A DNA stretch of 52,026 nucleotides. Source: Girardia tigrina. Taxonomy: Eukaryota. The stretch is taken from assembly GCA_001938485.1 (NCBI GenBank), contig MQRK01214676.1, forward strand, positions 62,001 to 114,026. The letters run 5' to 3'. The position numbers and the translations under genes were made by a program. Positions 5,501 through 23,500 of this stretch are shown in pieces; position 1 is the stretch's first letter, and every line of letters starts with the position of its first letter. The notes beneath the pieces are model-generated. The model saw only the letters and a program-made list of their open reading frames with translations, did no database searches and was not told the DNA's origin.

Positions 5501-8500
5501 TGTTCATATACACACATCATCTACACACATCAGTCAAACATAGTCAACCTTCGCACAACGTAAAGTTTATTAAAACACGACAAAATACACGACCTGTGTA
5601 CACTGACAAGAAAACTTTCAAAGGAGATGTCAATTTATGGATTTACATCAATGTTTCGCACTTGAAAAGTGCTGTCCCAAGTAATTTGCACAGGGTGTTT
5701 CCATTAAAAAGGTCGAATCTTTCGTTGTGTTAAAGATATATTAACCAAACGTTGTGAGTATAATATTCTACTTAATTTGCACCTTGGTTGTTGATTTCAT
5801 TAAAATCAGATTGATGGTTGCTGAGTTTTCACCGAAAAACAAAGTGTCCCAACTAATTTGCACGGTAGTGTAATTATGTCAAAGGTAATTTCCTCATGGT
5901 AACCATATATACCATATTTCAGGATTAATAATTTCCTATTTTCTATTGACATTTCGACAACGATTTGCAAGGAGGATATATATTTTTTGAATCAACTATA
6001 CATCAATATCTTTAGGATACAAGATTTAATACATGATAATGCAATAAGTTTAAAAGTAATATCCCGTACCAAAAAAATTGAAAGCATGTTCGGCAATAAA
6101 TCTCCAACGCTATTAGAATTGTGTTCGGATCTAATTTACCAATATACATATCATGGGTGTAACACCACATACATTGGAGAGACTGTGCGTCATCTCTGTA
6201 AGAGAATCCAGGAACACAGTCACAATGAAGGTGGAAGTACCATTGCAGGACATAGAAGACATTGTAAAGGAGATATAACTTCACAACACTTTAAAATTCT
6301 GTGCACTCAATTTAAAAATTATTGGGAGAGAGTGACATGTGAAGCGTTATATATAAGATCTTTGGATCCTAAAATTAACGTTCAAACGGCATTCTCTACA
6401 ACTTTCTTGAGAGTTTTTAAATGATGTACTGATTACGTATTGATTGCATAAACATTAAATGCACTATATAAGTAAATTTCGTTTGAAAAATCTTTTGTTC
6501 TGACGATGACGGATAAACCATCGAAAGTAATAAACTTTGATTGGCTTAAAAATTTTGCATTTGACAAATTGCCAATTTTATTTCAATTTAATCACAATTT
6601 AATTAAAGATTTATTTAATTATTAGCTAAATTTTATTTTCTGTGTTACAAATGTGTTAAATATTTATTTTACTCTATTAAGGTATTATATTACTAAAACG
6701 TTCATACAGAAATGAGAATTCTCCTAGAATAGAAGCTGGAGGAATGGTCTTGGTGAACCACACTAACTTCTAAGTAGGTATCAATGCAAATGATTCTTAA
6801 AGACAAATTTAAGGAAAATTTGTTTAGCATAATTTATTTTGTTACAAATTAATTATTTCGTAATTCAAAGAATTATAAATGCTTAATGAAATTCGCTGTA
6901 ATCTGACGCTACTTTTATCAAAGTTTTCATTGCAGTACTAACCGAGGAAGGTCAAAAGGACTCGCTGCGTGAACGGTGGCTTTATCTCTGGCTTCAGTAT
7001 TTTGTCTAATAAGACAATTGATTAATGTAGACTGAAGCCAGTATAAGGGTCTCTCTTGAGGTCGACCACAAGAACTTAGCATAAATAAAAATGTTTATCA
7101 TCTACTATCACATATGTAACTTTCTGTTTAACAACTAGTAGTCCTGATGTTGACAGTAAACCATCGAAATTAATTAACAAAAAATAATTTTCAAATGGAC
7201 AAATGATTTCTTTTATGACAACTTGACAATTTTATTAAATCATTATTTATATTTATCTAATGTAAATCATTGAATTTCTAATTTTTAGTGTTTAATTAAT
7301 TCAATACCCTTGTAGAACATGATTACTGGACATCATGTCCCTCTGAAAATATCGATACATAAATGGAGGACTCACCTGTTAGAAACACAGTTGGAGTAGT
7401 AGGCATATAGATTTTTGTCAACTTTCCCATCGTTCGACTCGATAAATCTATCGCACAAGGAATACGCTCGAATACTCGACACTCCTTGGAGCGTTTCGCC
7501 GAAATGAGAATATATTGGCGATTTACTTACCGATTCGAGTCTCTTCAACTGTCGCGAAGTCGCAACATAGAATCTCTGAAACGAAAACTTGACATTAAGC
7601 GACTTCCTTTGACTAATGTTTCACAACAAGCAGATAACTATGTTAGCTACATATAAGGGTTATACGAGTTTTTACAAATGCGTGCAAGAAACACCAGAAT
7701 AAAATGCAGTAGCTTAAATTGGGAGATCAGGAATCACAGGTTATCTACAGACAACGATTGACAATATTACATCTACGATACACTACTCTTCCCGCCACAA
7801 TCGTTTATTACAAATACGAAATAATTTATAATGTCATCGCCAAATATTAAAAAATTCGTTAGTTCCTTTAGAATCTTATAAAATATACAATAAGGCAAAT
7901 GTTTTTTTTTACAAATTATCAAAAATAAATAACATATATTAAATGTATTTAGATCTACACCCGTCCCTGTTGACCATGCTGGAAATACTAACCAAAATAT
8001 TTATTTATATATTCCAACAATAATATAAATAAATATTAAATAAATGAAAATATTTGTAACATGTTTCGAAGAGTGTGGGAAAATAGAAATAAATATATAA
8101 ATTAAAAAATTTAACAAATATATAAAAACGACGGTATGTGACATTTTGGCACAGGTCGTTTTGGCGCGAAGCAGTTTTGGCGCGAGGCCGTTTTGGCACG
8201 ACAATTTTTGCGCTGTATCAATTGTTGCCATTTTAATTAAAAATGTGTAATCAAAATTTCATTATTGACAGACCATAGGTATATTTAAAATCTCCAATAA
8301 AATTCAATATTTCCGTATATAATTCCGTACATATTCCCTAAATTTATTTTAAAAAACAAATGGAAAATGTTCAGTCCAAGTGTGGAAAAGAAAAATTTAC
8401 CCACGGAGGATACCTTTATGTTTTCGATAAGTTTAGCACAGACCACTCCAAGAAGTTCTGGCGATGTGAACTGAAGAACGAATGTAAGGCCTGTTTACAC

Positions 8501-20500: not shown

Positions 20501-23500
20501 TTAGAGCTCCACTAATTTCTAAAGAAAACTGAGGAGTGTTTAAGTGGTTTTTCATGGCAGTCGTATTTCCACCTTTAATCGAAATTTTACTTGTACATCC
20601 ACCTATTTGACACTGTGATTCAGTTGATGTTATTTTCTTGAAATAATTCCAGACTCTCACTGTTTCGACAACATTTAATGGGCTACAAAAATCATATATT
20701 ATAAAATGAGAAAACCTTAAAATATTTATTTTATGTTTATTTACATGGTTTACTTAAATGTCTAAATTTTACAAAGCTGAAAATTTTAATAAAATAATAA
20801 ATGTTTTTCTAATCACTATAAATCACTTTTTAAATTTGTTTCCACAAAAACTCAAAATATTGAAATGATAAAACAAAAATAATTTGGCATTATTTTTTTA
20901 GCATCAACATTAAAAAAAACCAAAGCCTGCTATTTTCTTATAAAATTAGCAAAATTACAAGTACCTCATTGACTGTCGATATTGTCGTTAACCTTTAACC
21001 GGATAGAATGTTTTTGTAACATAAACGGATAGAAGAGTCTGAAGGCTCTTAAGCTGAAAATTAAATGTATACATAAGAAATCCTTGATAATTCGAACGTT
21101 CTTTTAATAAAATTCATGATTAGTTAAAAAAAGTGCTAAAAAATTGAATTTGAATTAGTATTTTGATTTTGATTTACGTACGATTAATAAAGAGTCCAAG
21201 AGACTCTTCTATCCGGTTAAAGGGTAAATATAAATACAAATGTAAGATTAAATTTGAATCACACTAAAATATAAAATTCCAATCACAAAAAATCAAAAAA
21301 ATAAACACAATGAAAGACAATGGAAACATTCTTTCGTTGGAAAACGAAAGAAACACGTTTTTCATTTACACAATTTTACCAAGGTAGATAACCCTCATTG
21401 GCATTTTAGCCCATATTCGTGATCGATCCCAACATTTAGTGAAGAATTTCCTTTTTTCTAATTGATAAACACTCGCAAATCATGCATCAAAAAGCTAGCA
21501 TCATATCCAGGTAGAGACGAAATATTAATCAAAGGGGTAAATAACACCGGGAAATCTGATCTCCCAAAAGCTACAATAAAACTTGTACCTGAAGAGGCGT
21601 ATAAAGTATGCAGGTCATTATTAAAACTAAAGCGAAAATTAAAATCTGTTGCCAAGATGAAGCAGACCATAATAGTATAAAAATAATCCCACAGGTGTCC
21701 GTAACGCAGCGCAGTAAACCGGAAATAGTGAAGTGGATCACCAAATCAAGTTGTGCACAATCATCACTTATTCTTGTCAGCATGGAACCGCTACTAATTC
21801 TACAGAAAACTAAATATGGCCAGTGGAATATCGAAGAGGTAAATTTAACGAAGAACCGATCGCTGGCTCTGAGCCCGATCAAAATAGAACTGGCCCCACA
21901 CATGATATTTAGAATTCCTATAAACGCAAAACAAATGGGAACAGCATTGATATTAATTGCAACTCAATCACTGACCTTGGCCAAGACCAAACACTCCGTA
22001 AATCCCCAAATTCAAATCTCGTTCTCGGGAAAGAAACTGTTCGAGCTCTTTTATTTCAGCTTTGTTAGAATCGTTGGACATTCGTAAATCACGTAATTGT
22101 CTTGAGAAATTGGCGGATAACTTTGACTGATTTGCCCACCGAACGAGCCACAAATTAGAACCGAGTGAAAATCCCTGGGTTACTATAAACAACATTAGTA
22201 TCAACGCCGCCAACCAATATCCCATTGAACGTAAATAGGCGAGGTAAACAGCTAATTTCACCTACAACAGGATTATAAAAATCCTTAAATGAATGTCCTC
22301 ACATTTCCTTCTTTTGAAAGTTCAGCTTCAATAAGTTTATTTCCACTTTTCGGAATCTCCGTTACGCCCATCTTTTCAAGTTCTTTTTTACATTCTTTTT
22401 CCTTTATTGAATCTTTCTCTTTCGAATCCTAAAAAACATTAAACATTTTTGAAATAACTAAATAAAAACTGATTTGAAAAATTTTTTCTATTGGAAAAAT
22501 ACCGTACTCAAAACTAAATAAATATTATTAGAACTATTAGACTTTATTTCTGGATCATATTTAATAATTATTATTATTATTTTCTATCCATACCACCATA
22601 GAAATGACAATACAAACATTTATTGCAAATGCCTGCAATAAAATAATATTGTCTGTCTGTCAGTTTGTCCAAATTATTGCGACAATTTTGTCATTTTATA
22701 AGACCAAATGAATAAAGCAAATTAAATTTTATTTTATACAATCGATTTAAAAAATTTTTAATTAACGTTGTATTAATTAATAAATTACCTAAAGGATATT
22801 TTTAAAATGTTGAAAATATTTCTTAATTACCGAAAAATGTTATTATTATATTAAATTATTATTATTATATTAAAATTAATCCGAATATATTTCTATAAAT
22901 TTAATTATTTTAGAGAGACTAAATTATATTGGGGCGCGTCAAAGGATAAAATTAAATTAGATCCAGAATCCGCACTTACATTCGACCAACTCCGACACTG
23001 GCTTACGTACCTGTGGGCAATATTGAAACAAACTTGGAAATATTAGACTCAAGTTCATTTGATGAACAAAAAAGGTTATTCAATAACTAATGGATTATTT
23101 TAAAGATAATTACACCGGAAGACCCAAGAGCGATTCTCTCCATTACAAACAGACAATTTGGAAAGGTATTCTGCTATACTAAAATGAGTCACTTAAAGTA
23201 ACAATTCCGTCGAAGGATGGTATCGTAAATTATAGGGTCGAATCAATCCAAAATTGAAAGATAAACCAAGAGTCAATGATTTTATTGCAAATATTTTTCC
23301 TTAGAAATAATTGTTTTTCAATTCATTTTTTCTATTCTTTTTATTAGATTGCTTTATATTAGCGGTTTTGGGATGCTACCATAGAATTAATACTAGTGAA
23401 TGATAATCGTAAATATCATTTACGATTGCAGACCAGATTCTGATGGTTTTCTTTCTATTAATAAAGTTTATTTTGTGCTGAGTTACATTTCTTTAAAGTT

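Follow-up and report, generated by a model that had tools for sequence, protein, structure and literature searches.

How does a transcript that carries three tandem copies of one exon come to retain a single one of them? This is the question raised by an MRP1/ABCC1-like gene on the minus strand of a 52,026-nucleotide stretch of the genome of the planarian Girardia tigrina (assembly GCA_001938485.1, contig MQRK01214676.1, positions 62,001 to 114,026; this whole stretch is referred to here as the window, and all coordinates are counted from its first letter). The copies, named A, B and C in the order in which they are transcribed, each encode the same part of the second transmembrane domain (TMD2). 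Two of them, A and C, are followed by intronic segments, the selectors, which are complementary to overlapping bases of one docking site, the dock, in the last intron of the array. This anatomy makes it reasonably likely that a downstream dock/selector system biases mutually exclusive splicing in the TMD2 exon array of planarian MRP1.

The exon array and its spliced forms

The gene encodes ABC_membrane and ABC_tran domains in the order that characterizes MRP proteins, the best matches of its exons, searched singly, are MRP1/ABCC proteins, and the exon order follows that of mollusc and annelid MRP1. A protein of another species, P0001, which shares 75% identity in the first nucleotide-binding domain and whose source is probably another planarian, served as an additional reference. 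The EF-1alpha encoded in the genome shares 92% identity with its counterpart in the land planarian Humbertium, no other full-length match exceeding 78%, which places the host among the triclads. Splicing was read from public contigs of four runs (X5, X6, X7 and X8), a kind of record that drops rare forms; the runs are taken as RNA because the exon joins that they contain are exact. The elements of the array are the following:

21976..22261, minus strand: upstream constitutive exon, ending in phase 1, 60% identical to P0001; exon-C contigs of X5, X7 and X8 carry its 3' end as their loose end
21918..21975, minus strand: intron of 58 nt before exon A, GT-AG, read from the sequence; P0001 continues the upstream exon directly into exon A
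21589..21917, minus strand: exon copy A, 329 nt, phase 1 to 0, matching Pfam ABC_membrane, 71% identical to P0001, joined to 7575 in X5, X6 and X7
18310..18623, minus strand: exon copy B, 314 nt, phase 1 to 0, with a GC donor, matching Pfam ABC_membrane in an intact frame, with the top profile score of the three
15881..16191, minus strand: exon copy C, 311 nt, phase 1 to 0, corresponding to human MRP1 residues ~1036-1129, with loose-end contigs in the four runs
7376..7575, minus strand: downstream constitutive exon, 59% identical to mollusc MRP1, whose start is fixed by contigs of A and C through their loose ends

Three tandem copies of one TMD2 exon thus lie between constitutive exons that end at 21976 and start at 7575. 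All three match one stretch of the Pfam ABC_membrane profile and are alike in length and phase, as expected of homologous tandem exons, and since amino-acid identity among them is just 16-22% (16% between A and C), the duplications must be old. Genome searches, performed on the assembly of 1.43 Gb in 255,254 contigs, point to approximately 20 ABCC-type loci elsewhere, in most of which the counterpart TMD2 exon and the one after it form one continuous frame; in the stretches of these paralogues that were scanned, the exon is present in single copy and no second array was found.

The contigs show A and C being employed singly. Those that end at the donor of exon A have a loose end from the downstream exon in X5, X6 and X7; in contigs that coincide with exon C, loose ends come from the upstream exon in X5, X7 and X8 and from the downstream exon in X5, X6 and X8. 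Among the contigs listed from the four runs there is no A-B, A-C or B-C joint, and none in which exon B is spliced; B is covered at the level of an intron in X5 and X6, and not at all in X7 and X8. The two copies seen spliced are those that possess selectors.

Exon A is the copy that has diverged most from canonical MRP1, exon B being the most canonical by profile score. In P0001 the upstream exon leads into an orthologue of exon A, and the 71% identity kept between the two indicates that exon A is old and selected. It is of note that the coupling-loop motif usual for the family (FFdtTPlGRIlnRF by its profile) is absent from exon A, and that the stretch that takes its place, although very different, is nearly identical in P0001; as judged from these residues, the transport function conferred by exon A may differ from the canonical one. 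In run X5, 0 differences fall in the 3'-terminal 211 nt of this exon (21589-21799), nearby introns differing by ~3.5%, and exon C shows 4 differences in 311 nt (2 silent and 2 conservative). Exon A, the most unusual copy, is under strong constraint.

A shared docking site and its two selectors

The pairing elements, all in introns of the array, are the following:

7708..7734, minus strand: docking site, 133-159 nt before the downstream constitutive exon, in a single-copy region; the pairing with A reaches 7748
21556..21574, minus strand: core of selector A, starting at intron position 15 after exon A; the pairing reaches 21537
15814..15839, minus strand: selector C, 42-67 nt after exon C

The minus-strand letters at these positions are those given in the initial annotation of the window, and the two duplexes that it described could be reproduced. 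The core of the A-dock duplex pairs at 19 of 19 positions by Watson-Crick bonds, with no G-U pair and with a 3-nt bulge (-29.4 kcal/mol), and can be extended to 33 bp and -43.5 kcal/mol (21574-21537 with 7709-7748). The C-dock duplex comprises 21 bp, including 2 G-U pairs, at -24.5 kcal/mol, or 25 bp at -27.7 kcal/mol in its extended form. The duplex coordinates bear out the suggestion that A and C compete for the same dock bases, in agreement with their separate use in the contigs.

When the dock is scanned against the interval 7760-21974, the two top matches lie directly behind exon copies A (-33.3 kcal/mol) and C (-27.7 kcal/mol), as had been anticipated; the next best reaches -21.9, over a mean of -8.7 and a standard deviation of 3.9. 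Among the outcomes that, according to the initial annotation, would speak against its proposal are equal matches scattered through the intron and a motif belonging to a dispersed repeat, and neither of these was encountered: no further match in the interval approaches the first two in strength, and neither selector A nor the region around the dock has a second copy in the genome. A second test was restricted to preset positions, comparing the first 100 nt after each donor to the last 250 nt of the final intron, with 150 shuffles. For A, 0 of the 150 shuffles were as good (z about -8); for B, 130 were, which is background, and its best pairing with the dock amounts to only -12.3 kcal/mol. The idea of several selectors consequently holds for two copies, A and C, and fails for B.

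The two selectors have a common core, within which two differences turn an A-U and a C-G pair into G-U pairs, such that the helix is kept. Exons A and C being only 16% identical, any neutral likeness between the introns that follow them should have been lost, yet their selectors share this core. A shared core and changes that preserve pairing through G-U would argue for selection.

The dock sequence does have relatives elsewhere in the genome, and this calls for consideration of a repeat origin. At ≤2 mismatches, 11 other places in the genome match the dock 22-mer and 0 match the control; the eight contigs inspected among these matches contain 5S ribosomal RNA (rRNA)-like sequences or copies of a 5S-derived short interspersed element (SINE), and 18 of 22 dock bases are identical to the 5S gene. 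One could thus propose that a dispersed 5S-derived SINE, inserted in opposite orientations, left the pieces now read as dock and selectors, their complementarity stemming from the insertions, with no need for selection. This proposal is largely refuted and retains almost no credibility: a profile built from 20 5S-like copies, picked independently of the dock, yields no match at the dock or at the selectors, the flanks display no homology, selector A is unique in the genome at ≤1 mismatch, and the 300-nt region around the dock is single-copy. An earlier match between the dock and a 5S-like profile (E = 0.0004) was discounted as circular, the copies having been picked for their likeness to the dock. 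Selector A pairs with some SINE copies at -28 to -29 kcal/mol and with true 5S at only -20 kcal/mol. In a very improbable scenario, the dock would have been recruited from a piece of 5S rRNA or of a 5S-SINE, the flanks of which have since eroded, and abundant SINE transcripts made by RNA polymerase III could act in trans as decoy docks, shifting exon choice in this drug pump. The dispersed family in question consists of a 5S head and a common 3' body of ~130 nt (loci L051-L070, L003, L006 and L045-L050), and two types of true 5S gene occur beside it.

From pairing to exon choice: a probable mechanism

That the pairing is functional, including the variant in which the bridge from A alone matters, is probable, and held with considerable confidence; its link to exon choice is one that we infer from the layout of the locus. 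In the mechanism envisaged, the dock would be transcribed last and pair with either selector A or selector C. Pairing with A would loop out B, C and a transposon-rich intron of ~13.8 kb (this distance is an estimate, the span crossing an assembly gap at 11547-11931), and would bring the acceptor to within ~150 nt of the A donor, which lies 15 nt from the duplex. Pairing with C would span ~8 kb, favour C, and block the dock from A. Upstream copies would be skipped by way of weak splice sites or local structure, double inclusions, which are frameshifts, would be cleared by nonsense-mediated decay (NMD), and B, with its GC donor and no selector, would be rare or condition-specific. The resulting pumps would differ at human MRP1 residues ~1030-1130, which comprise transmembrane helices TM13-TM15 and the coupling loop.

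A number of observations weigh against this mechanism. In X5 and X6, contigs of exon C are the deepest of the spliced forms (~200 and 119) and those of exon A reach ~47, so that the stronger duplex accompanies the shallower contig, contig depth being in any case a poor measure. In addition, 6 of 150 shuffles were as good as C in the preset-position test, yet C finds the same dock window; without a fixed dock, its duplex is modest. Both points would suit an alternative in which the A-dock duplex is the only functional one, an RNA bridge by which the distal exon A is turned on, while C, as the nearest exon, is used by default and pairs with the dock incidentally; a proximal-default model of this kind has been described for 14-3-3 in PMC4691838. 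We regard this alternative as unlikely, because with the dock held fixed 0 of 1013 real 100-nt tiles match the energy of the C tail, because a finer scan yielded a single competitor in ~104 kb (-28.4 kcal/mol at 30060-30021, inside an upstream coding exon), and because C pairs at the very bases recognized by selector A, through a core that the two have in common. The chance that the tail of either B or C would do as well as C does is a few in a thousand.

The reading frame also needs to be taken into account. Every copy measures 3n+2 nt (329, 314 and 311 nt), such that any transcript retaining two copies, or none, is thrown out of frame, which could enforce exclusivity alone, and NMD would mask double inclusions in poly(A) contigs. 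Since isoform depth, furthermore, does not track duplex strength, the pairing could be regarded as a leftover or as the product of chance, with exclusivity arising from splice-site strength, splicing factors and NMD. This explanation appears quite improbable: a perfect 19-bp match (33 bp when extended) located 15 nt past a donor and ~135 nt before an acceptor lies far outside the null distribution, and frame and NMD leave its existence unexplained.

The remaining difficulties for a dock/selector mechanism concern the copies themselves and the energetics of the pairing. Exon B, which is intact and closest to canonical MRP1, has no selector and is left unexplained by the model; neither on its upstream nor on its downstream side was a B selector found above background. 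In systems of this kind the exon next to the dock may do without a selector, but B is the middle copy; as it was not seen spliced either, it may not be an active member of the array. Exon A adjoins the upstream donor, at a distance of 58 nt, and the model offers no account of how it is skipped in the C isoform. Local opening would cost 8-12 kcal/mol per site. Finally, no orthologous intron for covariation was obtained, P0001 being recorded without a contig and exon A having no relatives among the protein fragments or metagenome contigs searched.

Structures on the upstream side were considered as well. Pairing with a putative upstream dock reaches -19.1 kcal/mol for B and -21.4 kcal/mol for C, compared to a null mean of -19.8, providing no indication of a dual-dock, bidirectional arrangement, and the pairing between the B donor region and the 3' end of the upstream exon is just at the 5% level. 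A duplex of -26.8 kcal/mol, a value matched in 11 of 400 shuffles, can form between the upstream exon (~22190-22230) and the part of the 58-nt intron that holds its branch site and pyrimidines (21930-21965). As a weak candidate, such an upstream-exon hairpin might hide the acceptor of exon A.

Related systems and the looped intron

The downstream-dock layout that the initial annotation ascribed to insect 14-3-3zeta, Mhc and MRP is stated in PMC6071210, where docks of 14-3-3zeta, Mhc and MRP1 are placed downstream of the exon cluster and MRP exon arrays are described as having arisen independently in several phyla. The insect MRP1 cluster with its downstream dock, attributed in PMC6071210 to Yue et al. 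2017, is the closest counterpart, resembling the planarian array in gene family, tandem copies, selectors behind exons, and a dock in the last intron. The planarian locus differs from it in having three copies at 16-22% identity, one of which is intact and has no selector, and in its loops of 8-14 kb, filled with transposons; it is known here from sequence and contigs. The planarian array presumably occupies the same exon position as the insect cluster (Drosophila exon 8). Exon duplication in MRP1 of Platyhelminthes has reportedly been noted before, with pairing said to be restricted to arthropods, Capitella and Branchiostoma.

In a different phylum, Branchiostoma MRP figures among the clusters with a competing-RNA-structure code (PMC8791459, PMC9258826) and is, like the planarian gene, a non-arthropod MRP cluster with docks and selectors. 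The downstream docks of Drosophila 14-3-3zeta, Mhc and Dscam1 exons 4 and 9, as Yang et al. 2011 is cited in PMC4691838 and PMC6071210, likewise receive competing selectors located after alternative exons; the genes are unrelated, and in the planarian the dock-proximal exon has a selector of its own. Dscam1 exon 6 (Graveley 2005) and srp, the latter with bidirectional pairing, employ an upstream dock or two docks according to the account in PMC4691838; they have in common with the planarian array a competing long-range pairing, whereas the latter has no convincing upstream dock. A literature search found no report of a planarian dock/selector system. The mechanism is thus already published for MRP genes, and the planarian case, judged by its anatomy and single-copy splicing, would add a member.

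If functional, the arrangement would bring flatworms into the set of phyla that have an MRP array under competing RNA pairing, and provide more evidence for convergent evolution. With two selectors and a very long loop filled with transposons, it would be a simple case, and the animal is one in which RNA interference of splicing and NMD factors is routine. The pump handles xenobiotics, and since the three copies are ~80% different in a segment of its substrate path, such a switch could change drug specificity.

Two assembly gaps interrupt the looped intron. Contigs of two related runs, X5 and X6, connect 16959 to 17276 across the gap at 17083-17148, indicating that its two sides adjoin in DNA or pre-mRNA; these contigs lack the 316 nt around the gap (16960-17275), which contain short repeats and represent an insertion polymorphism. 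The second gap, at 11547-11931, falls within an element that has long inverted ends and has no bridge at the DNA level, but spliced contigs connect A and C to 7575 across it, such that order and frame stand. No fourth exon copy was found by a frameshift-aware profile scan, and this gap may hide a further one. Possible fossil copies at ~10.2-10.7 kb and ~16.3-17.0 kb were rejected, their score in the same scan (18.7) being below that of the control (26.2) and their DNA alignment likewise not exceeding it; the duplexes of their tails with the dock reach no more than -20.4 and -17.1 kcal/mol. The same 12-mer occurs at 10174-10185 and 16338-16349, with no fossil exon detected upstream of either.

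The elements identified in this intron are the following:

11200..12171, strand not assigned: element with long inverted ends (inverted repeats I1 and I2), the left part of which has a 90% copy near 6213-6616
8159..9921, plus strand: MULE transposon (frame 8560-9741, inverted ends), matching Pfam MULE, with inverted repeats I23 and I24
14516..15193, plus strand: Tc1/mariner-like transposase frame, matching Pfam DDE_3 and HTH

Introns of the window as a whole are rich in transposon-like frames (4293-5434, 8560-9741, 14516-15193, 44182-45064, 48626-49572 and 50678-51367), which include Tc1/mariner-like, MULE, reverse-transcriptase-like and other types, the Pfam comparison covering those at 8560-9741 and 14516-15193.

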